Origin: Phaeosaccion multiseriatum
Lineage: Eukaryota > Protista > Ochrophyta, other classes
NCBI GenBank assembly: GCA_965112735.1
Contig: OZ218951.1
Coordinates: forward strand, 496,001-560,000
DNA length: 64,000 bases
Direction: 5' to 3'
The notes under the pieces were generated by a model that saw only the letters and a program-made list of their open reading frames with translations, did not search any database and had not been told where the DNA came from. Made by a program: the position numbers and the translations under genes. Below, piece by piece: positions 1,261-34,200 of this stretch. The first letter of the stretch is position 1; every line of letters starts with the position of its first letter.

Positions 1261-4200
1261 GGAGGGAAGTGCGAGCAGCCTGCGCCTGTCCAGGAGGATG
1301 CCATCGTCTCAAGGGGGGGGCGACGCTTCTGCCCCGCTGGCAATAGTGAGCATGGCGTGCCGCTTCCCCGGAGGCGCAGACAGTCCCGACGCTTTCTGGT
1401 CCATGCTGCTGGAGGGAAAGGACTGCATCACCGCCATGCCCTCGGGAAGACTCACTGGTGCGGCGAAGGAGTGGCACGGAGGCTTCATCGACGGCGTGGA
1501 GATGTTCGACAACGCCACCTTTGGCATCTCCGTGGCTGAGGCCGAGGCCATGGACCCCACTCAGCGCATCATGCTGGAGGTCGGCTACGAGGCGCTGCAC
1601 GAGGCAGGCTTCTCTATGGCCACGCTGCGCAACAGCAACACCGGAGTGTTCGTCGGCTCCATGCAGCACGGCGACTGGGCCGCGCTGAACAAGGATGGTG
1701 ACACCAAAGCTCACTCAATGATGGGCGAGTCAGCGGGCTGCCCTGCAAATCGCCTGTCCTATGCACTGGGCTTGCGAGGCCCAAGCATATCTGTTGATAC
1801 GCTTTGCTCTTCCTCGCTCGTTGCCTTGGACACGGCTTGTCGCTACCTTCGCTTCGGCACGTGCGATGCTGCGGTTGTGGGAGGAGTGAACCTGCTACTC
1901 GGCTCCCGTTCCTTCGAGCAGCTCGACAAGGGAGGTTTCTTGTCCAAGGACTGGTACGTACGGGAGAATGGGGGGGCTGGCCTTGGGGAGCATCGAGCTC
2001 CTGTAACTCGAGTAGAGTCATAGAGTGCTTGCTGACAGGTAATCACAAGCATCATTCCTCTCATCGGCTTGTCCTTCCTTCTCTGCCCCCATCTGCCTCG
2101 TGCTGCTACCGAAGGCGCTGCAAGGCCTTCGACGCAGCGGCTAACGGCTACGTCCGAGGAGAGGGCTGCGGCGCCTTGGTGGTGAAGCGGCTTGACGACG
2201 CGGAGCGCAGTGGAGACAACATCCTGGCCGTCGTGCGGGGAAGCTCCGTGAACCACAATGGGCGCTCTATGCGGCTCACAGCACCCAGTCCAGACGCACA
2301 GCGGACACTGATTGAGGCAGCCTTGGAGGAGGCGGATGTAGCGGGCAGCGAGGTTCACTTCGTGGAGGCGCACGGCACCGGCACGGCTCTTGGCGACCCC
2401 ATCGAGATGAGCGCTCTCAAAGCCGCCTACGGAGAAGGGCGGGAGAGCTCTTTCCCACTCATGGTGGGAGCGGTCAAGACCAACATTGGTCACTTGGAGG
2501 GCGCCGCAGGCATCGCGGGACTCATCAAGACCATCCTCGCGCTTCAGCACCGAGCTGTTCCACGCAATCTGCACCTCGGCAAGCTCAATCCTGAGATTGG
2601 GGTTGATGGATTTGCGGTGGCATTCCCTTCGTCGAGACTATCTCCATTGGGTAGCGAGGAGGGACACCCCAATGACAGCGAGGAGGTGCTGTACGCAGGA
2701 GTAAGCTCGTTCGGAGCAGGAGGCACCAACGCCCATGTGGTGCTGAGCAGCGCTGCGCCGAGAGTGGAGGGAGGGGTCTCGAAAGCGCCGAAGGGGAGTG
2801 AGGATACGGAGGTCGCCTCACCTGCGCACGTCTTTGTCTTCACGGGGCAAGGCTCGCAGTACCCCGGAATGGGCAAGGAGCTCTACGACGAGGTTAGTTG
2901 ATTCGTTGCGCGCACCATCTCCGTCTCAGTCCTCTCTTGGCATCCATCACCTCGGCCCACCTGCCCTCGTTCTCATATTCGTCTCTCTCTCTCTTGTTCC
3001 CTCCGCTCTCTGTGTCTCTCTTTTGGTGCCTCAACAGCGTGCGGTCTTTCGCGAGTGCGTGCAGCGGTGCAGGAGGCTGCTCATGGAGCGGGCCTGGCTG
3101 GACAAGTCTGTGGTGGAGCTCATGTACCCGGCGGTCGCTGAGGACGGGGAGGAGGAGGAGGAGGGGGAGACTGCACAGGCGCTGCTGAAGGAGACACGCT
3201 ACTGCCAGCCGTGCCTGTTTGTGCTGGAATACGCCCTTTGCGCGCTGTGGAAGTCGGAGGGAGTGGAGCCGTCGATGGTGATGGGCCACAGCCTGGGCGA
3301 GGTAGTGGCGGCGTGCGTGGCCGGCGTCATGTCGCTGGAGGACGGGCTGATGCTGTCCGCCAAGAGAGGAGCCGCCATGCAGGCCTGCCCCGAGGGGAGT
3401 GGAGTGATGTTCGCAGTGAAAACGGGCAGGGAAGCAGCAATGGCAAGGATTGACGCTGCGGGGGTGGCAGGGGAGGTGGTGCTGGCGTCCTCCAACGGCC
3501 CTCAGGCCTGCGTGATCTCTGGTGCTCGCAGCGCTGTGGACAAGGTGGTGGAGAGACTCACAGCCGATGGGGTGGGCTGCAAGGCCCTGGAGGTGTCGCA
3601 CGCCTTCCACTCTCCTCTCATGGAGCCCGCTGTACGTGCGCTGGAGGAGGCACTGAGGCAGGTGTCATTCAGCGCCCCACGCATCCCCCTGGTGTCCAAC
3701 GTGACAGGCGAGGTGGTGAAGGCTGAGGAGGTGACGCAGGTAGCGTACTGGGTGCAACACATGCTATCGCCGGTGCTGTTCGTGGAGAGTATCACCACGC
3801 TGCTCCGGGAGAGGCCTGAAGGTGTACGAGTGGTAGAGATTGGGCCCAGCTCTGTGCTGATCAACATGGCGCGGCAATGCGAGGGAGAGAGGTCGGACGT
3901 GATGTGGCAGCCGTCCATGCGGCGGGAGGGGAGCGACACCGCCTCGTTCGACAGAGCAGTGGCGGCAGTACTGGGCAAGCCCACACCTCTGTTCCCCACC
4001 CGTCGTGCGCTCCCTTGGTTCGAGCAGCAGGCGCATGCGATGGTACCAAGCGGCGGCGTCGTCGAGAAGAAGGGAGGAACACTCCTCTCATGCCGCTTCA
4101 CCCCTCAGCTCAAGGGCTTGCTGCAGGATCACGCGGTGGGAGGAGTGGTGCTCATGCCGGGCATGGGGTACATCGAGATTGGCCTTGCCGCCTTGCTGAA

Positions 4201-7200
4201 GGGCAAGCCTTTCCCTAGCGAGACGCAAGTGGTCCTGAAGGGCCTGGTCTTCATGGCTCCACTGGAAATTGCAGGCGCTCGTGCCCCCGATGTGGACCGT
4301 ACGGTGGAGGGCTCCACCACTGTGGTCGCTTCTGAAGTCAGTGCCTTCGTCACTGCCCGCGGCAGCGTGCAGTTTATCGGAGGTCCCCACGGCAAGGCTG
4401 GAGAGACGGTGGCGAAGGCGACTTCCCTTCACTTGTGCACAAGGACGGAGGCAGAGACATTGGACGTGGCGCGGGTGAGAGCCGCGGTAGGGGACGAGGA
4501 CATCGCCGAGGGGCTCTACCTCAAGCTTGCCAGTGCTGGTTATGACTACGGTGCCAGCTTTGTCCGAACGCAGCACCTTTTCGCAGCCAGTGGACAGGCC
4601 TTGTCGGTTGCGGCGGCAATGGATGGCAGCCTATCGGCGGAGTGGGAGATCAACGGCTTCTACCTCCACCCTGCAGTGTTGGATAATGCCGCGCACACGA
4701 TGTTGGCGCTCTTGCCGGAGGAGCTGACGAGCAAGGCCTTTGCCGCCGTCTTCTTGCCCACCGGCTGCGAAGAGGTGCTTGTGCGAGGGGCCATCACGGG
4801 CGAGAAGGTGTGGGTTCATGCGGTGGTGAAGGAGGTGGACTCTCAAGCTCGTGCGATCGAGTGCGACATCGTGATAGCACACTTTGAGACGAAGCAAGTG
4901 CTCGTGCAGCTTAACCGCTTCCGGATGCAGCTGGCCCGAGGCTTCTCCCGCACCAACCCCGTCAGCCGAGCGCTGTATTCTCTAGAGTGGCTGCCCAACG
5001 ATTCCATCTCCCGCAGCAGAGGTGACGTGGAAGAGCGAGAGGAAGCTTGGCTGCTCCTCACCAGCGGCGCTCGTGGCAGCTTGGACAAGGCAGCGAAAGA
5101 GAGCTTGCCCATCTCTGTGACACTGACGGAGAGGGAGGTCAAGATCATCGACGACTCCACCCTCGCTTCAGAAGCGCCAGCAGGATGGGGCCGTGTGGTG
5201 TGCACCTTGTTCGGCGGCAAGCAGCAGAGCCCCAGCCAAGAGGCACAGACACTCCACTTGTTGCTACAGCAGCTCTTACGAAGGCCAGCTCCCTTGATGG
5301 TGCTGGTGCAGGACACGCTGAGTGGCGGCGAGGGGTGGAGGCATCACTGGGTGTACGGCATGATTCGAACCGCTCGTGTCGAGCACCCTTCGCTGGCCAT
5401 GACGGTGGTGGACGTGGGCAGCGAGGACCTGCCCAAGTGCTGGGCCATTGAATCACTGGGGCAGGACGTTTGGGTGCGAGACGGACGATATCTCACGCCT
5501 CAGCTGACTCGCTCCTCGGTAGTCAGTCTTCCCTTCTCCTTCGATCTCATGGCGAGGGGAAGCATCGAGGGAGGCTTGAAGCGCAGAGACGTACTCCCTT
5601 CCGAGAGAGACGCTGCCTTGCAGGACGGGGAGATTGAAATTTGTGTCAAGGCGGTGGGGCTCAACTTCAGAGACGTGCTGAATGTGCTCGACCTGTACCC
5701 TGGCGACCCTGGGCAGCCTGGCATCGAGCTATCGGGGGTGGTCACTCGAGCATCGCGAAACTCGCGCTTTCAAGTGGGAGACAAGGTCTACGGGTTTCCG
5801 GACAAGGGCTGCTTCTGCTCCCACGTAACGACACGTGACGTGTGTCTGGCCATCATGCCTTCCAACAGGACCTTTGATGACATGGCAGCGTTGCCTATCG
5901 CGTGGCTCACAGTGGTGCACGCCTTTGAGCAACTCGCTGGCTTGAAGCGTGGTGAGAAGGTGCTCATCCATGCCGCGTCAGATGGAGTGGGTCTGGTGGC
6001 CGTGCAGATTGCTCAGCGCATCGGAGCGGAGATCTACGCCACTGCTGGATCCGAGGAGAAGCACGCCTACTTGCGAGGCCTGGGCGTGAAGCACGTTGCG
6101 TCGTCGAGAGATGCGGAGGCCTTCAAGGCTACCATGGGAGCTGCAAAGGTGGATGTGGTGCTCAATTGCCTGTCCGACAACTTCATCCCTTACTCTCTGG
6201 AGCTGCTGACGAAGAACGGGCGCTTCATGGAGATCGGCAAGCGAGGCGTGTGGACCGGGGAGGCGATGAAGGCTGCCAGGCCCGACGTGCTGTACGAGCT
6301 GATTGCGCTGGACTCCATGATAGCAGACGACTTCAAGGCCGAGAAGCAGGGCTGGGGGTTCGCTAGGCTGGAGCAACTGACAGCGGACAGTGAGGCGGGC
6401 AGGGCCGAGGCGCTACCAGTGAAGACATTCGACTTGAGGGATGAGCTTGTGGAGGCAATGAACTTCCTCAGAACTGCGAAGCACATTGGGAAGGTTGTGC
6501 TCAGTAGCCCTGAGTGTGGCATTCCCGTCGTGCGAGATGGGACTTACGTTGTCAGCGGTGGGCTGGGGGCGCTGGGGCTGGCGACTGCGAAGCATTTGGC
6601 TGATAAAGGAGCTCGTCATCTTGTACTGCTCTCGCGAGGGGGAAAGGTCAAGGCGGACTCCCAGTCGCTGTGGGAGGAGCTTGTCACGGTGGCTGGCGGG
6701 GTGGGCACCAAGGCTGTATCGTGCGACGTGTCTAGCGCGCAGTCGCTTGAGAAGGCTCTAGGCACGGCGCTCAGTAGCATGCCGCCCGTACGAGGTGTCA
6801 TCCACGCTGCTGGCGTGCTCGACGATCGCTTGCTGGTGGACCAGACGCCCGAGAGTATCGAAGAGGTCTTCAAGCCGAAGGTGGAGGGCGCTTGGAATCT
6901 GCACGAGCTGTCGGTGCAGATGGCCTGGCCCTTGGACTTCTTTGTGTCCTACACATCCATGGCAGGTGTGCTAGGCAATGCAGGCCAGGCCAACTATGCT
7001 GCAGCCAACGCTGCTGTGGACGGGCTGATGCAGCATCGTCGGCGTCTCGGTTACTCCAGCTCTGTGGCCCTGCAGTGGGGGCCGTGGGGCGAAGCTGGCA
7101 TGGCCGCTCGATCCGAAGTTGCCATGGCCAGTCTGGAGATGGCCGGCGTTAGGCTCATCAGTAAGGCAGTAGGTATGGCGGCGCTTGATGCCGGCGTGTC

Positions 7201-10200
7201 GGCCCCATCTGCGGTATCGCGCGAGCTCTTGGTCCTGCCTGGCATGGACTGGCTTGCCTTTTCTCAGGCTGCTGGCAACCCGGGGATGCTTGATGCTCTC
7301 GTTAGAGAGGCTTCAATGGTTGGACCGCAGAACAAGGCTAGCAACAGTGTGACTACCGAGGTTAAGCGCGACCTACTGGAGCTTTCGAAGAAAGAGCGAA
7401 AACCCATGCTGCAGGCTTTAATCATGGAGATGGCAAAAGCATGCATTGGGGAAGCAGGCATCGAGCTCGACGCTTTGAGGCCTTTGATGGAGGCTGGGCT
7501 GGACTCCATGTCTACGGTGGAGCTTCGGAGTCGACTTCAAGCTCGTTTCGGCGTGCCTGTCCCCAACGACGTGCTCTTCAGTCACCCCTCAGTGGCAGCA
7601 CTGACTGTGTGGCTCGAGGGCTTGGTCTTGGGGGCTGAGGAGGGTGAATATGAGGAGAGGAATGCTGAACCGGCTGGAGGTAGCATGACTGCCCCCCTGG
7701 CTGTTGTGGGCATGGCGTGCCGCTTTCCGGGGGGCTCGAACAGTCCAGAGGCCTTTTGGTCAATGCTGCGCGCAGGTACTGACTGCATTCAGACTGCCCC
7801 TCTGAACCGGTGGGCGGGAAAAGAGGGGAGCGAGGATTGGCAAGGCAGCTTCATTGCTGAGGTGGAAATGTTTGACCCCGCCGTATTCGGCATCTCGTTT
7901 GCCGAAGCGGCTGCGATGGATCCGCACCAGCGAGTGATGCTGGAGGTTGGATACGAGGCATTGGTCAACGCGGGGTGCGACAAAGCAAGCTTGGCGGGCA
8001 GTCGGGCAGGCGTCTTCATCGGCATGATGAGCCTCGGCGACTGGGGCTACCAGGGCAAGGATGTAGGGGCTGGAGTATACCGCACTATGGGTCGCATCCA
8101 ATGTGGCGTTGCCAATCGGCTCTCGTACGTGCTGGGGCTGCAGGGCCCGTCCATGACCACTGACACGGCGTGCTCGTCATCGCTGGTGGCCTTGGAAAAC
8201 GCTTGCAGCAGCTTACGCATGGGCAAGTGCGATTCCGCTGTCGTCGGGGGCGTCAATTGCTTGCTCGGGCCAGTGGCCTTTGAGGACATTCAGGGCAGCG
8301 GCTTCCTGTCGCCGGACTGGTAAGTGCTTCCATTTTGTACCTCCGCACCAATGGTTCTGCTCCTCCGTCTCGTCCGACTTTACTTGCGCCGCCGACTAAA
8401 ACTCCCCTCACGCTACCCATGCCCTTCTCAGGCGCTGCAAGACGTTCGACGCGTCGGCAAACGGATACGTGCGTGGTGAAGGATGCGGTGCCGTTGTGCT
8501 GAAACGTCTAGATGACGCCCTCGCTGCCGGAGACACCGTCCTCGCTGTGATTGAGGGCTGTGCCGTGAACCACAACGGAACCAGTGCCCGCCTCACGGCC
8601 CCCAGCCCCGCCGCCCAGCAGAGACTCATCGAGGCGACGCTGCGTGAGGCCGGTCGAGAGGGCTCCGAGGTACGCATCGTGGAGGCACACGGCACGGGCA
8701 CATCTCTCGGCGACCCAATCGAGATGAGTGCTCTCAGGGCCACGTACGGAAAGAACCGTGACGACTCTTTCCCGCTGGTAGTGGGTGCGGTCAAGACCAA
8801 TATTGGCCATCTGGAGGGTGCGGCGGGCATTGCCGGGCTCATCAAGGCCGTCTTGATGCTGCAGCACCGCGCCGTGCCCGCCAACCTTCACCTCGAGAGC
8901 GTCAACCCGGAGCTGGCCATGGACGGCTTCCCCGTGCAGCTCCCGTCGGTGATGGTGCAGCTGGAGGACGAGGGAGACATGTTGGTGGGGGTGAGCTCAT
9001 TCGGGGCGGGAGGAACGAATGCACACGTGCTGCTGAGGAGCCATGGGGAGAAGAGTGACTCCGTACTGACGGCTGGTATGAAAAGCGATGGGGGCCCCTT
9101 CGTCAAGGAGGAGGCGCTCTTCCCGAATCGTGTGGCCTTCCCGTGGTACAAGAGCGATAATCACGCTTTATTTCCGAGTGGAGGGGTGCGAGATGAGAAG
9201 GGCGGGGTGCTGCTGTCCTGCCCATTCTCTCCAAGGCTCAAGGGCCTGCTGCAGGAGCACGCAGTGGGGGGGGTGGTGCTCATGCCGGGCATGGGCTACA
9301 TTGAGCTGGCCCTGGCCACGCTGCTGAGGGGCGAGGCCTTCCCCGCAGATGGCCAGGTGCGCATGAAGGGCCTCGTCTTCACGGCCCCGCTGGAGGTGGC
9401 AGGCGCCCGTGTGCCTGGCGTGGAGCGGATGGTGGATGGGTCCACGACGGTGGCATGCTCGGAGGTGAACGTGTTCCTCTCTGCCCACGGTAAGACGCGG
9501 ATCACGGGCGGCTCCCGCGGCAAGGCAGGTGAGGCTGTGGCCAGGGCGGCGTCAGTGGTGCTGGAGGCAAGAGAGGCTACTGCAATGATGGACGTGAGGA
9601 GCATCCAGGAGGCAGTGGGGCAGCGAGACGTGTCGGGTGAGCTGTACGCCACGTTCGCCAAGGCCGGCTTCAACTACGGTCCCCGCTTCAGGCGAACAGA
9701 GCGCTTGTACGCTGCCGAGGGACAGGCTCTGTCCGTGGCGACAGCGCAGGACCCCAGCCTGTGCTCTGAGTGGGAGGTGCGTGGATTCTACCTCCACCCC
9801 GCCGTGCTGGACAGTGCCGCACACACCATGCTTGCGCTTCTACCTTCTGATCTAACCAAGGGTGGTACGTTCTTGCCAGCTGGATGCAATGACGTGGTTG
9901 CGAAGGGCGCCATCAGAGGAGACAAGGTGTGGGTGCATACCGTGCTCACCGAGATCAGCGACAAGCGCGACAGCGTCAACTTTGACATTGTCATTGCCGA
10001 CTTTGACAGCCAGTACGTGCTCGTGACCATGAAGGGCGTCAAGCTGCAGAGGGCCAAGGGCTTTACGCTCCTGAACCCTCTTCGTCGAGCCTTATACTAT
10101 CTGGAGTGGCAGCCAGACAAGGCTCTGGCTCTGCCAACCACCACGGGGAAGGATGGTGTGGAGAAGGAGACGTGGCTGGCTTTGGTAGATAGAGTAAGTG

Positions 10201-13200
10201 CAGCTACAGCGTTGGTGAAGCGTATTGAGCAATCAGTGCCCGAGCACGTTACGCTGCGTGTGCAAGAGTGTGCCTATGACCAGGATGTGGTGAGGGCCTT
10301 GGAGAGGGGCGAGTGGTCGCGAGTGCTGTACGTGATCGGCGGTGGGGGAGAGGAGGGACAGACGGCAAGGTCATCAGCCAGCGCCGCTCAGCAGGAAGCA
10401 CAGAAGCTGCTGGCGGTAACGCAGCAGCTGGCCAAGAGACTAATCCCCTTGATGGTGCTACTACACGACACGCTGAGCGGGGGGGGCGAGGGATGGGCAC
10501 ACATGCTGGTCTTTGGCATGATTCGCTCCGTTCGTATCGAGCGGCCAGAGATGCAGATCATGGTCGTGGAAGCGGATGTGGAGGACATGAGCTTGGTGTT
10601 GTGTCTTCCCCTTCAGAGTCAGGACGTGCGTGTGCAAGGAGGAGAGTGCAAGACGCCTCAGCTGACTCGCTCCTCGGTAGTCAGCCTTCCATTCTCCTTC
10701 GATCTCATGGTGAGGGGAAGCATCGAAGGCGGCTTGAAGCGCAGGGACGTACTCCCTTCCGAGAGAGACGCTGCCTTGCAGGACGGGGAGATTGAAATTT
10801 GTGTCAAGGCGGTGGGGCTCAACTTCAGAGACGTGCTGAATGTGCTCGACCTGTACCCTGGCGACCCTGGACAGCCTGGCATCGAGCTATCGGGGGTGGT
10901 CACTCGAGCATCGCGAAACTCGCGCTTTCAAGTGGGAGACAAGGTCTACGGGTTTCCGGACAAGGGCTGCTTCTGCTCCCACGTAACGACAAGTGACGTG
11001 TGTCTGGCCAACATGCCTTCCAACAGGACCTTTGATGACATGGCAGCGCTGCCTATCGCGTGGCTCACAGTGGTGCACGCCTTTGAGCAACTCGCTGGCT
11101 TGAAGCGTGGTGAGAAGGTGCTCATCCATGCCGCCTCAGGTGGAGTGGGTCTGGTGGCCGTGCAGATTGCTCAGCGCATCGGAGCGGAGATCTACGCCAC
11201 TGCTGGATCCGAGGAGAAGCACGCCTACTTGCGAGGCATGGGCGTGAAGCACATTGCGTCGTCGCGAGATGCGGAGGCCTTCAATGCTTCCATGGGAGCT
11301 GCGAAGGTGGATGTGGTGCTCAATTGCCTGTCCGACAACTTCATCCCTTACTCTCTGGAGCTGCTGACGAAGAACGGGCGCTTCATGGAGATCGGCAAGC
11401 GAGGCGTGTGGACCGGGGAGGCGATGAAGGCTGCCAGGCCCGACGTGCTGTACGAGCTGATTGCGCTGGACTCCATGATAGCAGACGACTTCAAGGCCGA
11501 GAAGCAGGGCTGGGCGTTCGCCAGGCTGGAGCAGCTGACAGCGGACAGCGAGGCGGGCAGGGCCGAGGCGCTACCAGTGAAGACATTCGACTTGAGGGAT
11601 GAGCTTGCGGAGGCAATGAACTTCCTCAGAACTGCGAAGCACATTGGGAAGGTTGTGCTCAGTAGCCCTGAGTGTGGCATTCCCGTCGTGCGAGATGGGA
11701 CTTACGTTGTCAGCGGTGGGCTGGGGGCGCTGGGGCTGGCGACTGCGAAGCATTTGGCTGATAAAGGAGCTCGTCATCGTGTACTGCTCTCGCGAGGGGG
11801 AAAGGTCAAGGCGGACTCCCAGTCGCTGTGGGAGGAGCTTGTCACGGTGGCTGGCGGGGTGGGCACCAAGGCTGTATCGTGCGACGTGTCTAGCGCGCAG
11901 TCGCTTGAGAAGGCTCTAGGCACGGCGCTCAGTAGCATGCCGCCCGTACGAGGTGTCATCCACGCTGCTGGCGTGCTCGACGATCGCTTGCTGGTGGACC
12001 AGACGCCCGAGAGTATCGAAGAGGTCTTCAAGCCGAAGGTGGAGGGCGCTTGGAATCTGCACGAGCTGTCGGTGCAGATGGCCTGGCCCTTGGACTTCTT
12101 TGTGTCCTACACATCCATGGCAGGTGTGCTAGGCAATGCAGGCCAGGCCAACTATGCTGCAGCCAACGCTGCTGTGGACGGGCTGATGCAGCATCGTCGG
12201 CGTCTCGGTTACTCCAGCTCTGTGGCCCTGCAGTGGGGGCCGTGGGGCGAAGCTGGCATGGCCGCTCGGTCCGAAGTTGCCATGGCCAGTCTGGAGATGG
12301 CCGGCGTTAGGCTCATCAGTAAGGCATTGGGTATGGCGGCGCTTGATGCCAGCGTGTCAGCCCCATCTGCGGCATCACGCGAGCTCCTGGTGGCGCCGGG
12401 AATGGACTGGCAAGCATCCGCGCCGGGGGCTTTTGGTGGCTCGACAATGCTTGAGGCCCTCGTAGAGGGTGCGGGCTTGGGTAGCAGGGTGGAGAACAGC
12501 GTTACTGCTGCCGTGAGGCGTGACCTGCTGGAGATGCCAGAGCCGAGTCGGAAGGCCATGCTGGAAGGCCTCATCACGGAGATCGCAACGGCATGCATTG
12601 GTGAAGCGGGCACCGTGCTCGAAGCTGATACGCCTTTGATGGAGGCTGGGCTGGACTCCATGTCTACGGTGGAGCTTCGGAGTCGACTCCAAGCTCGCTT
12701 CGGCGTGTCCGTCCCCAACGACGTGCTCTTCAGTCACCCCTCAGTCCTAGCACTGTCTACCTGGCTGGAAACCTTGGTGATGGGATCTGAGGAGGATGAT
12801 GAGGGTGAGAGTGAGTCGGTTGGATACCAGGGGGGCGACACGAAGGCACCGTTGGCAGTGGTGGGCATGGCCTGCCGCTTGCCAGGTGGTTCGAACAGCC
12901 CAGAGGAGTTTTGGGCCATGCTTAGCAATGGCAAGGACTGTGTCCAGCCTGCTCCGCTCGACCGCTGGGCGAGCAAGGAGGAGGATGAGCAGCAGTGGCA
13001 AGGAAGCTTCATCGACGGCGTGGAAATGTTCGATCCATCTGTGTTCGGCATATCCAGTCCTGAGGCTTCTGCCATGGACCCACACCAACGGGTGATGCTG
13101 GAGGTGGGACTGGAGGCGCTTGTGAATGCGGGCTATACCAAGCGAAGCCTGAGTGGCAGTCAGACCGGAGTGTTCGTGGGCATGAGCGGCAGTGACTGGG

Positions 13201-22200: not shown

Positions 22201-25200
22201 AGTGCGCGAGGCGCTCTTGAGACTGCCGCCTGGCGACCGACAGCAATCAGTGCGATTGGCGGTGCTTGATATCGCCAAGGACCTACTTGGGGAAGGTGCC
22301 GACGAGCTGGACGCGAACACGCCTTTGATGGAAGCAGGTCTTGACTCTTTGTCAACAGTGGAGCTGCGCGGCCGGCTACAGGCTCGCTTCGGGGTTGTAG
22401 TGACCACTGACGTGCTCTTCGCGTATCCCACGGTAGCGGCGCTGGCAGTATGGATCGAAGCGGAGGTGCTTGGCGAGGTAGAGGAACCCTCTGGCAGTCG
22501 CTCTGCGGCGATCGCTGCTGAAGCGCACCGCATTGACTCAAGGGCGCCGCTGGCCGTCGTCGGGATAGCCTGTCGCTTCCCTGGAGGGGTAAAGAACACC
22601 GAGGACTTCTGGGCTATGCTCTGTGCAGGGACAGACTGTATTGGAGCCAGCCCTGTCGGTCGTTGGGGCGAGGAGGGTCAGAAGCAGTGGCATGGGGGCT
22701 TCATTGATGGAGTGGAGGCTTTTGACAACACCTTCTTCGGCATCTCTGCGGCCGAGGCGGGTGCCATGGACCCTCATCAGCGCGTCATGCTGGAGGTGGG
22801 GTACGAGGCTCTGCACAGGGCGGGATACCGCAAGGATACACTACATGGCAGCAACACCGGTGTGTTCGTGGGTATGTCCGGTAGCGAGTGGGGCTCAGTG
22901 GTTGACGATTCGAACAAGGGTGCGTACTCCGTCATGGGCATGTCCAATGCGAGTCCGGCAAATCGGATGTCTTACGTGCTGGGCCTCGGAGGGCCGAGCA
23001 TGAGTGTCGACACGGCGTGCTCGTCGTCTTTGGTGGCACTGGAAGGGGCCTGCAGCAGCTTGCGACTGGGCAAGTGTGACATCGCCTTGGTGGGAGGCGT
23101 CAACTTGCTGCTGGGTACACAGACGTTCGGGACCCTCGCCGAAGGAGGTTTCCTGAGTCTTGACTGGTAAGTGCGTGTCTCTTCTGTGTGGGTGGGAGCT
23201 TGTTCTTGGGGCCGGTATGAGAGCAAGATCAAAAGGCGCAAGCTGTCTGAAAGGCCCCTGTTGCTGATGGGTTTCCTCTTGTCTGTTCTTCACTTTTGCA
23301 AACCCTCAATGGTCAGGCGCTGCAAGACGTTCGACGCTGCGGCCAACGGTTACGTTCGAGGTGAGGGCTGCGGCGCCGTGGTACTGAAGCGACTGGACGA
23401 TGCACAGGCCAATGGCGACCACATCCTCGCAGTCGTCAATGGCTGCGCTGCGAACCACAACGGGAGAAGTTTGCGCTACACTGCCCCGTGCCCTTCTGCT
23501 CAGCAGCGTCTGATGGAGCAGGCACTGGCGGAGGCCGGCTTGAGCGGTGTGGAGGTTGATTACGTGGAGGCGCACGGCACCGGGACTTCTCTCGGCGACC
23601 CCATCGAGATGAGTGCTTTGAGGGCCGTGTATGGCCATGGCCGTGAGGAAGCTCGGCCCCTGGTGGTTGGGGCGGTGAAGACCAATATCGGGCATCTAGA
23701 GGGTGCGTCCGGAATCGCTGGCCTCATCAAAGCTCTGCTGGTCCTTCAGCATGGATCTGCTCCCCCCAATCTCCACATGAAAAAGCTCAATCCGGAGCTG
23801 CCCCTGGAAGGCTTTCCAGTGACTCTACCTTCCGCCATGGTATCTCTGAGTCACGAGAGCGGGGAGCGACGTATCGCTGCAGTCAGTTCCTTCGGTGCTG
23901 GTGGTGCCAATGCACACGCTGTGCTCAGCAGCTTCGGACCAACGTTGGTTGAGAGGGGCGAAGTCTTGCTGCAGCTGGATGGACAGCATAGCAAGAAGCG
24001 TTCACCGGTGGTGTTCTTGTTCACCGGACAGGGATCGCAGTACGTGGGCATGGGCAGGGAGCTGTACGAGAAGGAGGGCGTGTTCCGCGAGTGCGTGCAG
24101 CGATGCAGTAGGCTGCTCATGGAGCGGGCCTGGCTGGACAAGTCTGTGGTGGAGCTCATGTACCCCACAGCGGAGGGAGAGGAAACTGCACAAGCGCTGC
24201 TGAAGGAGACGCGCTACTGCCAGCCGTGCCTATTCGTGCTGGAGTACGCCCTGTGTGAGCTGTGGAAGTCGGGGGGCGTGGAGCTTTCCATGGTGATGGG
24301 CCACAGCCTGGGCGAGGTAGTGGCGGCGTGTGTGGCCGGCGTCATGTCGCTGGAGGACGGGCTGATGCTGTCCGCCAAGCGAGGAGCCGCCATGCAGGCC
24401 TGCCCCGAGGGCGATGGAGTGATGTTCGCAGCGAGGGCAGGCAAGGAGGCGACTTTGGCAAGCATCGACGCTGCAGGGGCAGGCGAGGTGGTGCTGGCGT
24501 CTTCGAATGGACCGAGCGCGAGCGTGATCTCTGGAGCGCGCAGTGCTGTGGACAAGGTGGTGGAGAGGCTCACGGCAGATGGAGTGGGCTGCAAGGCCCT
24601 GGAGGTGTCGCACGCCTTCCACTCTCCTCTGATGGAGCCCGCTGTACGTGCGCTGGAGGAGGTTCTGAGGCAGGTGTCGTTCAGCGCCCCACGCATTCCC
24701 CTGGTGTCCAACGTGACGGGTGAGGTGGCGAGAGGGGAGGAGGTGACGCAGGCGACGTATTGGGTGCAACACATGCTGTCGCCAGTGCTGTTCGCAGAAG
24801 GCATCCACACGCTGGTGGAGCACTGGATGGGAGACGGGAGGGGGGCTGACCTGAGCATCGTTGAGGTGGGTCCCAACCCTGTGCTGAGCAGCATGGGAGC
24901 CAAGTGCGAGCGTCGCGAGGGGCTGGCGTGGATCTCCTCCCTCACGCGCGGGAAGAGCTCTGATGATTCGTTTGGAGCGGCTTTGAGTACAGTACAGCAG
25001 CGAAAGTGTAAGGAGCACATCCTGTTCCCAACGCGCAAAGCCTTTCCTTGGTACGCAGCGCGAGTCACAGCAGCGCCTCAGACGTGGAGTGAAGCGGAGC
25101 AGGGCCCACTATATGTTGTTGAGTGGGAGGCGGTGGAGGTGCCCACGGCTTCGCAGCAGGCTTTGCTGACCGGCAGCCTTCCGTGGCTCGTCGTGATTCC

Positions 25201-28200
25201 CCAGGCAACCGAAGAGCAGCACGCATGGAGCAACCACAGAGCGTTGGAAGCTATCGGAAGCGCGGCGACAGCAAGTGGCGTAGAGGTGCACATGGTGGAG
25301 GCAGTCGGTTCCGACGCGCAGCCACGTGGGGCCCATCTCTTCTACTTGGCGTCAGCAGGGACGTGCTCTCCTACCGATGGGGCAATCCAGTTTGTGCAAA
25401 CTGTACAGAGCTTAGGCGGGGACGAGGCAGTGATGCCGATCACCGTGGTGACAACGGGTGTGTACAGCGGTGCTGGTTGGCAGGACAGCTGGGCAGTGGG
25501 ACTGGTGAGAAGCGTACGCCTGGAGCGGGGCGACCTCTCCGTGAACCACGTGGACCTTGAGTGCGCCATGTCTCCACAGTCTGAGGGTGCTCAACCTACA
25601 GTAGAGGAGATGGAAGTTCAAACTATCTCCCAGGCTGTGACGCTGGCTGCCGGAGCCTGCGGCGGAGGTCGAGGTGTGGACCTGCTGGTTCGAGGGTGTG
25701 AGATCCTCGCTCCGAGGCTGATGCCCAGCACACTCCATCTGACATCGGCAGGAGTCGATCGCCTCACGTGCAGGGAGGATGGGACCTACCTGATCAGCGG
25801 TGGCCTGGGGGGACTGGGTCTGGCGACCGCGAATCACTTGGTGTCCCAGGGCGCTCGATACCTGCTCCTCCTTTCTCGAAGCGGCCGGGCGGCAGAGGAA
25901 GTTTCAGAGCTGTGGCAGGCCCTGCAGAGTATGGAGAGTGTCACCGCTGTGGCCGTGGCCTGCGATGTCTCTGAGATGCATCAGCTTCGAGACGCTGTAG
26001 CCAACGCTTTGGTGGACCTGCCTACCGTTCGGGGTGTGATTCACGCAGCAGGGGTTCTAGATGACCGTAAGTTGGCGGGGCAGACCGACCAGAGCATGCG
26101 GAAAGTGTTCGCACCAAAGATTCACGGGGCTTGGAATCTGCATGAGCTGTCGCTTGAGTGGGCCGAGAGGGAAGAGAACTTGGACTTCTTCGCATCGTAT
26201 TCATCTACTTCTGGGATACTTGGTAACATCGGACAGACGAATTATGCCGCAGCCAACTCCGCGCTCGATGGTCTGATGCGCTACCGCCGCCAGCAGCTCA
26301 GGCTGGCGGGCACCAGCATTCAGTGGGGGCCCTTTGGTGAGGCGGGCATGGCAGCGAAGTCTACGACACTGCGGAGCCTTTTCGAGATGGCCGGAGTGGG
26401 CCTGATCTCATCGGCGCTGGGTATGAAGGCACTGGATGCCGTCCTTGCAAGTCAAGCGCAAGCCAACGTGCAGGAGGTGGCCGTCATGCCGGCCATGAGG
26501 TGGGGCAAATTTCGAGCGAGCTTGGCCCCTGTGCACAGCGATTTCCTCGGGCAATTGACAGACCGCGGAGAAAATGGCGAGGCATCAAAGGGCTACAGCG
26601 TCAACGCCGAGGTGCGGGAGGAGCTCCTGCTCTTACCGGAGTCAGCACGGCGGGAGAGGATCGAGCAGGTCCTGACGGACATGGTGGTGGAGTGCGTTGG
26701 CGAGGACTTCACCTTGGCAGCAACGATGCCCTTGATGGAAGCCGGACTCGATTCGATGGCGTCCGTAGAGTTTCGCAAGCGAATCGAGGCCTGGTGTGGT
26801 GTCACCGTTTCGAATGGCGCCTTCTTCTCGTCTCCATCAGTGTCTGCAATGGCCGCGTGGCTCGAGGCCCGGATTCTTGAGGTGCGGGATGATGTAGAGG
26901 GGGGTAAAGAGGTGCTGACAAGACAGCACTTGTCCTCGGACTCTCGAGCCCCCATCGCTGTAGTGAGTATGGCGTGTCGCCTCCCCGGTGGAGCCAATAG
27001 CCCGGAGCAGTTCTGGTCGATGATGTGCGAGGGCAGAGACTGCATTACGGCAGCGCCACCCGACAGGTGGGAGAGTAAGACGGGCGAGCTGCAGCTACAG
27101 GGAGGGTTCATCGAGGACGTGGAGATGTTCGACAATGCCTTCTTTGGCATCAGTGCTGCCGAGGCAGAGGCAATGGACCCCAATCAGCGCCTCATGCTGG
27201 AGGTGGCCTTCGAGGCCCTCCATCGCGCGGGCCACAGCAAGAGCAGCCTGCGGGGCAGCAACACCGGCGTGTTCGTGGGCTTGTCGGACACGGACTGGGG
27301 CTTCGTGGCAGGAGATGCCGCTGCTCAGAGTGCCTATGGCGGAATGGGCCTGACGGCTTCGAACATTGCGAATCGCGTATCCTACACTCTGGGTCTCTGC
27401 GGCCCCAGTGCGTTGCTGCAGACAGCATGCTCGTCGTCCCTGGTGGCTCTGGACGCTGCTTGCAGCAACCTCCGCCTGGGCAAGTGCGACTCGGCGGTGG
27501 TCGGTGGCGTGAACCTGCTGCTCGGGAAGAGCACCTTCCAGTCCTTGATTGCGGGGACCTTCCTCTCCCCCGACTGGTAAGTTGCTCTGGACACTCTGGT
27601 CTGTGAAGTCTGATTCATTTATCCTATTGCTGCTCTTGGGCGTCTTCTCTACAGTCAAACAAGACCTTCCGTTGCACCCCACTCACACCCCACCTATATT
27701 TCTCTACCTTGCGACAGGCGCTGCAAGACGTTTGACGCATCTGCAAATGGTTATGTCAGAGGCGAAGGATGTGGTGCCATTGTGCTGAAGCGCTTTGATG
27801 ATGCTATGGCCAGCGGGGACGCTGTGCTAGCGGTAATCGAGGGCTGTGCGGTCAACCACAATGGGGCCAGCGCTCGTCTGACGGCACCCAGTCCTCTTGC
27901 TCAGCAGCAGCTTCTGTCTGCCGCTCTGGCAGAGGCGGGAAGGGACCCCGCAGAGGTGAGCTTCGTGGAGGCGCACGGCACGGGAACGGCGCTGGGAGAC
28001 CCCATCGAGATGAGCGCCCTTAAGGCAGTGTACTGCGGACCGGACCGCAGCGAGGCAAATGCCTTGGTGGTAGGTGCGCTGAAGGCCAATATCGGCCATC
28101 TGGAGGGTGCAGCAGGTATTGCAGGCCTCATCAAGACCGTACTGGTGCTGCAGCACCGCATCGCCCCTCCGAACCTGCATTTGAAGGACATCAACCCCGA

Positions 28201-31200
28201 GCTGGAGCTCGCCGGCGTCCCTGTGACGCTGCCTGTGACCATGGAGCCCGTGGGTCAGGGCGGGCGGACAGGAGTGCTCGTTGCTGCCGTGAGCTCTTTC
28301 GGTGCCGGCGGAACCAATGCTCACGCCGTGCTATCCGGTCCCAGAGCTGGGAGTACGGCCGCGCATACCGACGGAGAGGGCGTCGGCTTCAACGATGCTC
28401 TTCAGAAGGACAGCGAGTCAGAGCGTGGCGCATTGTACCGCACACGCCAAGCGTTTCGTTGGTTCAGGCCTCCACTGGCATTCATGCCCAGCGGCGAGGT
28501 GGTCCAAGAGGGAGACGGAATGCGGCTCTCTTGCCCCTTCTCGCCTCACATCAAGGACCTTCTCAAGGACCACGCAGTCAACAATGTGGTGATCATTCCA
28601 GGGGTGACGTACATTGAAGTGGGTGTTGTCACTGCTCTAGAAGCAAGACAGCTCGGGGTGGAGCAGCAAGTCGTCCTGCAAGGAGCCAACTTTGTGGCTC
28701 CATTGGAGATTGAGGGTTTCCAGCACACGGGCACGGACAAAGCGCAGAGCCGCAATACTATTGTCTGTGACGGCTTGAGTGCTCTACACGCGAGCGATGG
28801 AAGCATGCAGTTTTTCGGAGGCGTTGAGGGTGACAAGGGAGCGACCGCGAGGATGGAACACGTGTCTGTCATGGAGCGAACCGAGCCGCGTGACATGCTG
28901 GATATAGAGGGAATCAAGGGGCGGGTAGGGACTGTGGACTTGGCCCATGGCCTGTACAAGGCCATGGCGGATGCCAACTTCAACTATGGCCCTCGCTTTG
29001 AGCGGAGTTTACAGATGTTCGCCAATGACGGAGAGGTGCTATCGGTCGTGCGTGCTCTCGACTCGGACCTGTGCGAGCCTTGGGAGGCGACGGGCTTTGC
29101 TCTGCACCCTGCGGTGCTCGACAATGCGACTCACTCACTTTTGCACGCAATCCCACGCCAGTTGTTGAGAGCGAGGGATGGAGCTCCATTCCTGCCCGTT
29201 GGCTTTGACGAGGTGATCGTTTCTGCCCCCATATCGGGAGCAAAGGTATGGGTGCACACGACGCTCGGTGAAGTGGAGCCCGGGGGCAACTGCGTCAAGT
29301 TTGACATCAAGATTGCCGACTTTGATAGCAAGCAGATTCTTTTGGAGATGCGTGGGTTCCGGGCTCAGCGGGCGAGAGGCTTTGTGCGCTCCAATCCGCT
29401 TCGTCGGGCGATGTACACGCTTAAATGGCAGACCACTGAGTCGTCTACACAGGAGGAGGCCCCTGGTAGTGATACTGACCCTGCTGAGGCGGCGGTGCCA
29501 CAGAAGTGGCTGGTGGTTATTCCACAGGACGAGAGGGAGGAAGAGATTTCAATCATTGCTGCAGTGCGGCACTGTGTTCCGGAGAACGTGCACATACACA
29601 CTCGATATGGGGGGATGGACGCCTCCTGGGATGATGGTGCTCTTCTTTTTGGAGAGGACGAGTGGGCTCGCGTCTTGTACGTGCCGATCTCTGGGGATGG
29701 CAAAGAAGACGCAGAAGGAAGCCCGCAAGCACGAGCGGCCTACGCTCTGCTATCGCTACTCAGGAGCATGTCCACTACGTCGAATGTGCCGCTGACGGTC
29801 TTGACGAGGGGCGTCCAAAGCGGCGAGGACTGGCGTGACAGCTGGGTGACTGGGCTGGTGCGGACTGCGAGAGTGGAGCACCCCTCCCTGCAGATTGGCG
29901 TGGTGGACCTCAGCGGCAAGAAGGACCAAGACAGCGAGCTTGCCTTAGGCTTGGCCTTCCCTACTGCCATAGAAGATGTGTGGGTACGCGACGGACAGTG
30001 CTGGGCTCCTCGGCTTGTACGTCAGCCCCTGCAGCTTCCCTTCTCAATAGATTTGAAGGCAAGAGGCAGCATTGCCGACGCTTTCGCCCTTCGCGATGAT
30101 GTGAACCATGGCAAACACCAGCCCCTTGACCCAGCTGGCAGCTCCGTACAGGTGGCAGTGAGGGCAGTTGGTCTTAACTTCCGAGACGTGCTGAATGTGC
30201 TGGACATGTACCCTGGCGACCCTGGAGATCCTTGCTCCGAGTTCGCCGGAGAGGTGATCAGTGTGGGAGGAAGCTCGCGCTTCAGTGTCGGCGATGCAGT
30301 GTTTGGCTTTGGCGATGCGGGATGTTTGCGCAGTCATGTGACGACGAGTGATGTGTGTCTGGCCGTGATGCCGGCCGTGCTGCGCTTCGAGCAGGCCGCT
30401 GCACTTCCCATCGTGTGCTTGACGGTAGTGAAGGCCTTCCACGACCTCAAGGCTGGAGAGAAGGTGTTGATTCACGCCGCATCGGGCGGTGTGGGTCTTG
30501 CCGCCGTGCAGTATGCTCAGCGGGTGGGCGCAGAGGTGTACGCTACTGCCGGTGCTGCTGTGAAGCATGACTTCCTCCGGAGCTTGGGAGTGGAGCACAT
30601 TGCGTCATCGAGAGACGCAGAGGCGTTCAAGCAGTCCATGGGTGAGGTGAAGGTGGATGTGGTGCTCAACTCACTGAGCAGGGACTACATTCCCTTCTCG
30701 CTGGCCATGCTAAGCGAGGGCGGTAGATTCGTGGAGATTGGGAAGAGAGGTGTATGGAGTCACGAGCAGATGCGCACCGCCCGGTCCGATGTGAGGTACA
30801 ACCTCGTCGCTGTGGACGCCATTGTCGAGTCCGACTTTTCGGCGGGTGAGCCGGGCTGGATAAGCGACGAGCTGCAGCATCTGGCTGAAGACTGCATGTC
30901 TGGCAATGTGAAGCCGTTACCGACCATACCATTTGACATGAGGGAGGATACCCAGAAGGCCATGGCACTCATGAGCCAAGCAAAGCACATCGGCAAGGTG
31001 GTGCTGACCAACCCCTCGTACGGTGTGCCAGTCGTGTCCGATGGCACGTACGTCATCAGCGGCGGTCTGGGCGCTCTCGGCCTCGTGACGGCCCAGCACC
31101 TCGTGTCGAGGGGCGCTCGTCACCTTGTGCTGCTGTCGAGGAGTGGGAAGGTCGCCGAAAGCATGACAGAGCAGTGGCAGCAGCTTCAGAACAAGGTGGA

Positions 31201-34200
31201 GCTGACAATCCATACTCCTACTTGCGATGTTGCTGACGCGGAGGCACTTCGGACTTGCCTGGGGGGCGTGCTGCCTCTGCTCCCCCCTGTACGCGGTGTG
31301 GTGCATGCTGCCGGGGTGCTGGATGATATGCTGCTGGGAGAGCAGACGGCGGAGAGCGTGATGAACGTCTTCCGACCGAAGGTGCAGGGGGCGATTAACT
31401 TGCACGAGCTTTCGTTGGCTTGGGCGACGGAGGAGGGGCGCGCTCCTGGCCTTGACTTCTTCTTTTGCTTCACATCCATGGCCGGAGTACTGGGTAACGC
31501 TGGACAGGCCAACTACGCTGCAGCGAATGCGGCTGTGGACGGGCTGATGCGGCACAGGCGACAGCTCGGGCTCACAGGGACGTCATTGCAGTGGGGGCCG
31601 TGGGCTGACGTTGGTATGGCTGCCCAGCTCGACATTGTTCAAAAACAGTTAGAGCTTGCGGGTGTGGGCACGGTGTCAGCAGAGCTCGGTATGGCTGCCT
31701 TAGATGCCGCTGCGATGCCGTCAGCGTACTTGGGCGATGTTGCCGTTCTGCCTGGGATGGACTGGGGCAAGTTTGCAGACAGCTTGGGTGCGTCCCGCGG
31801 CTCGTTCCTTCTGTCAGGGCTTGTCTCAACAGCAGCGGGCGCGTCGAGCAACACCGAAATCAACAATGAAGTGCGCGAGGCGCTCTTGAGACTGCCGCCT
31901 GGCGAGCGACTGCAATCAGTGCGATTGGCGGTGCTTGATATCGCCAAGGACCTACTTGGAGAGGGTTCCGAAGAGCTGGACGCGAACACGCCTTTGATGG
32001 AAGCAGGTCTTGACTCTTTGTCAACGGTGGAGCTGCGCGGCCGGCTACAGGCTCGCTTCGGGGTTGTAGTGACCACTGACGTGCTCTTCGCGTATCCCAC
32101 GGTAGCGGCGCTGGCAGTGTGGATCGAAGCGGAGGTGCTTGGCGAGGTAGAGGAACCCTCTAGCAGTCGCTCTGCGGCGATTGCTGCTGAAGCGCACCAC
32201 ACTGACTCAAGGGCGCCGCTGGCCGTCGTCGGGATAGCCTGTCGCTTCCCTGGAGGGGTTCAGAACCCCGAGGACTTCTGGGCTATGCTCTGTGCAGGGA
32301 CAGACTGTATTGGAGCCAGCCCACTTGGACGCTGGGCCGAGGAAGGTCAGAAGCAGTGGCAAGGGGGCTTCATTGATGGAGTGGAGGCTTTTGACAACAC
32401 CTTCTTCGGTATCTCTGCGGCCGAGGCGGGTGCCATGGACCCTCATCAGCGCGTCATGCTGGAGGTGGGGTACGAGGCTCTGCACAGGGCGGGATACCGC
32501 AAGGATACACTACATGGCAGCAACACGGGTGTGTTCGTGGGTATGTCCGGCAGCGAGTGGGGCTCAGTAGTAGACGATGCGAACAAGGGTGCGTACTCCG
32601 TCATGGGCATGTCCAATGCGAGTCCGGCAAATCGGATGTCTTACGTGCTGGGCCTCGGAGGGCCGAGCATGAGTGTCGACACGGCGTGCTCGTCGTCTTT
32701 GGTGGCACTGGAAGGGGCCTGCAGCAGCTTGCGACTGGGCAAGTGTGACATCGCCTTGGTGGGAGGCGTCAACTTGCTGCTGGGTACACAGTCGTTTGAG
32801 ACCCTCGCCGAAGGAGGTTTCCTGAGTCTTGACTGGTAAGTGCGTGTCTCTTCTGTGTGGGTGGGAGCTTGTTCTTGGGGCTGCTATGAGAGCCATATCA
32901 AAAGGCCCAAGCTGTCTGAAAGGCCCCTATTGCTGCTGATGGATTTCCTCTTGTCTGCTCTTCACTTTTGCAAACCCTCAATGGTCAGGCGCTGCAAGAC
33001 GTTCGACGCTGCGGCCAACGGTTACGTTCGAGGTGAGGGCTGCGGCGCCGTGGTACTGAAGCGACTGGACGATGCACAGGCCAATGGCGACCACATCCTC
33101 GCAGTCGTCAATGGCTGCGCTGCGAACCACAACGGGAGAAGTTTGCGCTACACTGCCCCGAGCCCTTCTGCTCAGCAGCGTCTGATGGAGCAGGCACTGG
33201 CGGAGGCCGGCTTGAGCGGTGTGGAGGTTGATTACGTGGAGGCGCACGGCACCGGGACTTCTCTCGGCGACCCCATCGAGATGAGTGCTTTGAGGGCCGT
33301 GTATGGCCATGGCCGTGAGGAAGCTCGGCCCCTGGTGGTTGGGGCGGTGAAGACCAACATCGGGCATCTAGAGGGTGCGTCCGGAGTCGCTGGCCTCATC
33401 AAAGCTCTGCTGGTCCTTCAGCACGGATCTGCTCCCCCCAATCTCCACATGAGGAAGCTCAACCCGGAGCTTCGTTTGGATGGCTTTCCGGTGACTTTGC
33501 CGTCTGCCATGGTGCCACTAAGTGCCAGGGATGGGGAGAGGCGTACTGCTGGTGTCAGCTCCTTCGGTGCGGGAGGAGCCAACGCCCATGTGGTGCTCAG
33601 CAGCTTCGGACCGACTCTAGTAGAGGAGAGCGAGAGCGGAGCCTTGCTGCAGCTTGATGTGCAGCAAAGCAAGAAGAGATCGCCGGTGACGTTCTTGTTC
33701 ACTGGACAGGGCTCGCAGTACGTGGGCATGGGCAGAGAGCTGTACGAGAAGGAGGGCGTGTTCCGCGAGTGCGTGCAGCGGTGCAGTACGCTGCTCATGG
33801 AGCGGGCTTGGCTGGACAAGTCTGTGGTGGAGCTCATGTACCCTGCCGCCGCTGAGGACGGGGAGGAGGATGAGGAGGAGGAGGAGACTGCACCAGCGCT
33901 GCTGAAGGAGACGCGCTACTGCCAGCCATGCCTGTTTGTGCTGGAGTACGCCCTGTGTGAGCTGTGGAGATCGGAGGGCGTGGAGCCGTCCATGGTGATG
34001 GGCCACAGCCTGGGCGAGGTAGTGGCGGCGTGCGTGGCCGGCGTCATGTCGCTGGAGGACGGGCTGATGCTGTCCGCCAAGAGAGGAGCCGCCATGCAGG
34101 CCTGCCCCGAGGGCAAGGGAGTGATGTTCGCAGTGAGGGCAGGCAAGGAGGCGACTTTGGCAAGCATCGACGCTGCGGGGGGAGCAGGCGAGGTGGTGCT

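Follow-up and report, generated by a model that had tools for sequence, protein, structure and literature searches.

Why should every complete ketosynthase (KS) domain of a giant algal polyketide synthase (PKS) gene be interrupted at one and the same codon, and does this arrangement turn whole modules into exchangeable cassettes? The question arises in a stretch of 64,000 nucleotides (nt) from the genome of Phaeosaccion multiseriatum (contig OZ218951.1, positions 496,001 to 560,000; G000:C2:496001-560000), hereafter called the window, which has a guanine plus cytosine (GC) content of ~60% and contains most of a giant PKS gene on the + strand. The intron very probably descends from one ancestral spliceosomal intron that was copied passively with modules and genes, and the symmetry of the exons is then a by-product of this history. 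Such an inherited intron is neat but ordinary.

Seven ketosynthases split at one codon

Seven modules follow one another on the + strand in one direction and are succeeded by two C-A units, as expected of a modular type I PKS. Their KS domains match PF00109 and PF02801 with E values of 1e-39 to 1e-72 and carry the Cys-His-His residues that characterize a KS. Each complete KS contains an intron, at 1954-2114 (KS1), 8320-8431 (KS2), 13478-13638 (KS3), 17908-18048 (KS4), 23167-23316 (KS5), 27577-27717 (KS6), and 32836-32988 (KS7), with lengths of 161, 112, 161, 141, 150, 141, and 153 nt, respectively; the following exons begin at 2115, 8432, 13639, 18049, 23317, 27718, and 32989. These splice sites are predictions made from the DNA, with donors both read and computed. 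All seven introns have the form GT[AC][AC]GT...AG and lie in phase 2 in the Trp or Gly codon of a D-[W/G]-R-C-K motif, which is split after its second base as TG/G (Trp) six times and as GG/A (Gly) once, at 13478. In the 252-position Pfam profile of the KS N-terminal domain, the intron falls between positions 222 and 224, so that once it is removed the profile reads on with no position gained or lost. In KS2 to KS7, the Cys motif precedes the intron, and the H-G-T-G and N-I-G-H motifs come after it.

The original prediction had listed these seven phase-2 introns, placed them between the catalytic Cys and the His residues, and described the exons between them as in-frame units that run from one half-KS to the next. 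All its donor coordinates proved exact, the order of the motifs was confirmed for KS2 to KS7, and the five single exons indeed measure 5046, 4269, 5118, 4260, and 5118 nt, are multiples of three, and contain no in-frame stop. The 2115-8319 interval holds one further intron, and its coding length of 6060 nt is also a multiple of three. It had also been claimed that skipping or duplicating one exon takes away or adds a single whole module and restores a complete, chimeric KS. This geometry stands, also for one exon together with one intron, as every donor is in frame with every later acceptor, and 21 open exons in the five loci read base by base (see below) have flanking introns of equal phase and a length divisible by three, as cassette exons do. 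Equal phase makes exon lengths divisible by three automatically, however, so that the divisibility is no additional evidence. Likewise, a GTAAGT donor in phase 2 gives an immediate TAA when the intron is retained, which is why five open reading frames (ORFs) stop three bases past the donor. Exon shuffling would have exon borders at domain or module borders, whereas these lie inside the KS, at profile position 222 of 252. Finally, independent insertions would hardly ever give a position shared by seven of seven KSs, but these copies are duplicates and thus not independent.

The intron throughout the genome

A six-frame search with PF00109 found 121 KS N-domains in the 67-Mb genome, 116 of which (~96%) end at profile position 220-233. 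Three others continue unsplit to position 252, one reaches position 243 with an internal stop, and one is truncated. The genome-wide figure of ~116 of 121 was counted from the match table and rests on profile end-points. Base-level reading covered five loci with a total of 256 kb, namely, the window and four of the ~20 other PKS loci, all four on contig C1. A GT-AG intron in phase 2 is present at exactly the same codon in 39 of the 40 KSs of these loci, including divergent classes with H-C-K, Y-C-K, or R-T-A after the split.

The three unsplit KSs (L020:4455-6989 on the - strand, C3:381710-382501, and C8:1933227-1934018) occupy matching places in three paralogous loci, and each has a split KS ~1.9 kb later. 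In the first of them, the active-site Cys is retained, N-M-G-N replaces N-I-G-H, a Ser/Gly-rich insert is present, and the only domain that follows is an ACP; this KS may be non-elongating.

The relatedness of the introns follows that of the domains that carry them. The KS N-halves form five types, 70-78% nt-identical between types, and the intron sequence goes with the type: a for KS1, b for KS2, c for KS3, e for KS4 and KS6, and d for KS5 and KS7. Introns of one type are 85-100% alike, while nothing is detectably shared between types. The KS4 and KS6 introns are 100% identical, the KS7 intron is 95% identical to that of KS5, and the type a intron (1954-2114) recurs with 90-97% identity adjoining KS matches in six paralogous genes. 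When the whole genome was searched with two of the introns, matches were found only at the same KS position of paralogous PKS genes and none elsewhere. An intron that matches only its positional homologues is not mobile, and it lacks the dispersal of an introner-type element.

Four of the five KS types have Trp at the split codon, and type c and the divergent KSs of the genome have Gly (D-G-R-C-K). Gly also occupies this place in nearly all bacterial and other relatives that were compared, and the two codons differ by one base at the first codon position (GG to TG).

The intron in other organisms

An environmental protein (P0121) with 67% identity ends a few residues past S-P-D-G. In its source contig, L102 (JGI sample 3300045918, 60% GC), the reading frame continues as G-G/GTACGT...CAG/G and then R-C-K-T-F-D, that is, with an intron at the same codon and in the same phase. 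This intron (672-730 of the contig, 59 nt) is unrelated in sequence to the KS introns of the P. multiseriatum genome, and the best nt identity of the contig to that genome is 70% for the N-half and 78% for the C-half. At such identities the contig comes from another organism, and an intron common to both predates the PKS expansion of this genome. The KS of L102 carries T-L-C at the active-site motif.

Other relatives are unsplit at this site. The KS of the closest named eukaryotic homolog, from Chrysoparadoxa australica (61% identical), is continuous through the intron position. Among 80 loci of metagenomic relatives, all at most 49% identical and presumably bacterial, 72 KSs have both halves contiguous in one frame (55 directly and 17 with gaps that result from alignment ends only). 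A fungal-like PKS contig (L100) has a phase-2 intron at 2415-2482, seven codons upstream of the algal position; this is a different intron, independent of the algal one, in the same part of the KS.

Module number and the location of breakpoints

Paralogues differ in the number and order of their modules. By type, the KS order is a-b-c-e-d-e-d in the window gene, a-b-c-d-e-d in R3, a-b-c-c-d-e-d in R1, and a-x-y-c-c-c-d-d-e in R4. R3 (C1:1380001-1417500) is 96% identical to the window gene and collinear with it, except that it lacks 15322-18750, a ~3.42-kb segment of the + strand that comprises KR-ACP-KS4n, the intron, and KS4c (n and c denote the N- and C-halves). Both ends of this difference, the only one that could be traced, lie in inter-domain linkers inside exons, and as a result R3 has one 6072-nt exon (KSc-AT-DH-ER-KR-ACP-KSn) in place of the two module exons of the window gene. 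In a paralogue with 96% identity (L014:3222-9290), the two module types are fused as a single KS-AT-DH-ER-KR-ACP module, which suggests that post-AT and post-KS linkers are interchangeable.

Sequence tracts shared within the gene also have their edges inside exons. The homology of a 9.67-kb repeat begins only at ~14300, roughly 680 nt inside the exon 13639-17907. Similarly, a ~3-kb tract at 17300-20350 (+ strand) is ~100% identical to ~26970-30020; it spans the KS4/KS6 intron and has both edges in exons.

One switch of homology does fall in an intron. The first ~600-630 nt of the exon 8432-13477, which encode a KS C-half, are 93-96% identical to 13639-14260. Type b and type c KSs are ~70% identical over the whole length of the N-half and 95-100% identical in the C-half. 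The switch occurs 14-15 nt before the acceptor, so that the last 14-15 nt of the KS2 intron belong to a tract common with the type c intron; it is found in three paralogues, and the tract stops at the end of the KS. The type b KS is thus a chimera.

To place this case among the others, edges of tracts with at least 97% identity were scanned in the five loci, where events are partly shared by descent. By class, one edge lies at an intron and ~20 are exon-internal. Introns with 20 nt on either side make up 3.1% of the sequence, which gives 0.65 classes expected at an intron (P ~0.5), and breakpoints are accordingly at chance level in introns and not concentrated there. All 14 real intron-located switches belong to the b/c class. 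A first count had put 34 of 134 tract ends at introns, but this was an artefact: 48 of the 62 raw intron-located ends resume past the intron. Alignments that are otherwise nearly perfect are interrupted by the faster-drifting introns and continue beyond them, which made the excess spurious. In addition, only five of the 20 possible combinations of N- and C-halves are present among 32 KSs. The KS therefore behaves as a linked unit made up of both halves and the intron, with shuffling falling between KSs.

Intron sequence and splicing

Between paralogues, positional introns have an identity of 0.90 with additional indels, compared with 0.94 at third codon positions and 0.98 at first and second positions. 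Purifying selection acts on the exons, and the introns drift neutrally, like silent sites. At this identity, with indels, conserved elements of the kind that would control a cassette exon are not seen in the introns outside the splice sites, and no Rfam family matched anywhere in the window.

Word-index protein searches for transcript fragments returned nothing above 61% identity with a single-exon query from the KS C-half and nothing above 67% with the last 100 residues of the KS N-half; neither brought up a fragment from the PKSs of this alga that would cross a constitutive or a skipped junction. All searches were done exon by exon.

Gene architecture in the window and interrupted paralogues

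Exon limits were resolved up to 39445, and all the features listed here lie on the + strand, with domains assigned by Pfam. The window opens in the end of an upstream module (1-1953, from Pfam and reading frames), which includes the C-terminal part of a KS0 cut by the window start, an ACP, and the N-half of KS1 (1328-1953). A (CACT) microsatellite of ~87 copies (361-706) fills an extra intron in the C-terminal half of this partial KS0. The first complete module is encoded by an exon pair, KS1c-AT-DH-ER-KR-ACP-KS2n (2115-8319), which the reading frames divide by a phase-0 intron in the AT domain (2893-3037). The exons that follow encode KS2c-DH-ER-KR-ACP-KS3n without an AT (8432-13477, 5046 nt), KS3c-AT-KR-ACP-KS4n (13639-17907, 4269 nt), KS4c-DH-ER-KR-ACP-KS5n, again without an AT (18049-23166, 5118 nt), KS5c-AT-KR-ACP-KS6n (23317-27576, 4260 nt), and KS6c-DH-ER-KR-ACP-KS7n (27718-32835, 5118 nt), the last being a copy of 18049-23166. 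The remainder of the gene, assigned from Pfam and ORFs (32989-46537), consists of KS7c-AT-KR-ACP-C-A, a second C-A unit, and a tail with hexapeptide repeats, and contains no more KS domains.

The module exons thus alternate between KSc-AT-KR-ACP-KSn and the AT-less KSc-DH-ER-KR-ACP-KSn, each running from a half-KS through the ACP to the next half-KS. From 2115 to 39445, AT-containing modules that only have a KR alternate with AT-less, fully reducing ones. If the assembly line is collinear, this would predict a hydroxyl on every second extender unit.

Two paralogues have interrupted reading frames in the assembly. At ~7779 of L005 on the - strand (C1:~1223779), the R1 exon that corresponds to the 5046-nt exon elsewhere has 5044 nt, 2 nt fewer, and runs into stops, either through a recent frameshift or through an assembly error. 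In another paralogue, on the - strand, an element of ~12.6 kb is inserted 11 nt into a type d KS intron (L010:1-4617 and L009:1883-10000; C1:1290883-1303617). The element has terminal direct repeats of ~195 nt and an ORF for reverse transcriptase, RNaseH, and integrase. The exons beside the insertion contain frameshifts and stops, and this copy looks degenerate.

Discussion

In this study, we found one intron position, in one phase, in ~96% of the KS domains of a genome and in another organism. A shared position of this extent is best read as inheritance. The original prediction had named the duplication of one ancestral intron as the null against which its own proposals should be held, and that null is now the favored account. 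Under it, the founding KS of the modular PKS family of this alga would already have had the intron in the Gly/Trp codon of D-G/W-R-C-K, following its second base, and every duplication of a module or of a whole gene would have carried it along passively. The frame-neutral exons from half-KS to half-KS would be a side product, as this would be the only intron of the repeat unit and would have the same phase each time. The family would evolve in the way of the intron-less bacterial lines, by unequal recombination and gene conversion between similar stretches that lie mostly inside exons, and the KS introns are most likely removed constitutively.

The original prediction had also proposed that chain length and hydroxylation pattern could be tuned through these introns, by recombination or by splicing. 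At the DNA level, two observations fit this idea: paralogues do differ in module number and order, and a seam between types b and c does lie in an intron. An intron-mediated mechanism is unsupported, with breakpoints inside exons, no enrichment of edges at introns, and linked KS halves. It is nevertheless worth asking how far the intron could have served as the seam at which crossovers add, drop, or swap module exons and thereby drove the diversification of the family. The symmetry of all exons (phase 2-2), the whole-module differences between the window gene, R3, and R1, and the switch of the type b KS, which three paralogues have 14-15 nt before the acceptor, would all fit such a process. 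Still, we consider it improbable, given that the b/c switch is the sole real intron switch among ~21 classes of tract edges, the traceable gain or loss of modules uses linkers inside exons, and KS halves are combined in only five of 20 ways. The b/c edge can equally well be a conversion tract that ended where homology ends, in a diverged intron, and module duplication and conversion are equally present in bacteria without introns (PMC8256042). More improbable still is alternative splicing that skips or reorders module exons, through which one gene would specify assembly lines of different module number and a product family differing by C2/C4 steps and by hydroxyl spacing. Here, the geometry is permissive, as any donor is in frame with any later acceptor and a complete KS is rebuilt, and the natural b/c chimera indicates that a KS of mixed origin can persist under purifying selection. 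But introns of 112-161 nt beside exons of 4-6 kb favor the pairing of splice sites across the intron, all splice sites are near consensus, and no conserved intron elements accompany them. Frequent exon skipping is reported to characterize bilaterian animals but no other eukaryotes (PMC6335736), and for the only giant algal PKSs examined at both the RNA and the proteome level, a single major product per gene was concluded (bioRxiv 10.1101/2024.01.29.577497).

The unrelated intron sequences of different KS types could, in turn, point to repeated independent gain at a favored site, either by a mobile introner or at a proto-splice site. This reading is close to refuted, as one codon and one phase are kept in ~116 copies, intron sequences match only positional homologs beside KS domains, intron relatedness tracks KS relatedness, and a second organism has the same intron position. 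Passive inheritance of one ancestral intron, from which we infer a single origin, has difficulties of its own. The unsplit KS of C. australica and the three unsplit KSs of this genome mean that the intron was lost or never present in some lineages, and its age is only loosely bracketed. The retention of ~116 copies with almost no losses finds its sole explanation in the rarity of loss in very long genes together with homogenization. Constitutive splicing of the KS introns is assumed, and the type b chimera means that the intron marked an edge of recombination or conversion at least once. All these points weigh against the account that we favor.

The evolution of these genes resembles that of known assembly lines. 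The intron-less PKSs of bacteria are documented to undergo gene conversion and duplication of modules (Nivina et al. 2021, PMC8256042; Jenke-Kodama et al. 2006, PMC1592344). As in the present genes, bacterial modules are mosaics with near-identical tracts of 0.3-3 kb within a gene and between paralogues, and module number shifts by unequal recombination with edges in or between domains. In contrast to the bacterial genes, those described here are nuclear and spliced, and the intron in each KS rides along with no evident part in the process. Multimodular type I PKSs of algae evolve by module duplication and AT displacement (Shelest et al. 2015, PMC4661987). They too are giant and modular, have duplicated modules that are 89-98% identical, and mix AT-containing and AT-less modules, but the present genome has far more KS domains, ~120 over ~20 loci. 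We found no statement on a conserved KS intron position in that study. The PKZILLA genes of Prymnesium parvum (bioRxiv 10.1101/2024.01.29.577497) are likewise very long, algal, and interrupted by canonical GT-AG introns; as far as the accessible part of the report goes, they differ in having 34 introns against a domain count well above one hundred and are not described as having one per KS at a fixed codon. Titin under the control of Rbm20 (PMC3575840) illustrates how module skipping would work, with tandem exons, all in frame, that make a modular protein shorter when they are skipped. However, skipping in titin is established from animal transcripts and requires a dedicated regulator of splicing, whereas the exons here are 4-6 kb long and the introns are without conserved elements. 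In the literature that we searched, neither a KS intron at a fixed position nor the skipping of modules through splicing was described. Module skipping by splicing, if true, would be a new way to program an assembly line; nothing here points in that direction.

From a practical perspective, the fixed position provides a rule for gene models of the PKS genes of this alga, in which each KS is expected to be split within the Gly/Trp codon of D-G/W-R-C-K. Applying it should avert the fragmented "single KS" models that are common in algal annotations. The type b half-chimera, kept in three paralogues, represents a tolerated junction in the middle of a KS and may interest PKS engineers. Finally, with ~116 copies of a single intron, the genome offers a neat example of how an intron is inherited while a domain is duplicated on a massive scale, and the intron is a marker of this PKS lineage, one that P. 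multiseriatum has in common with the environmental organism from which L102 derives.

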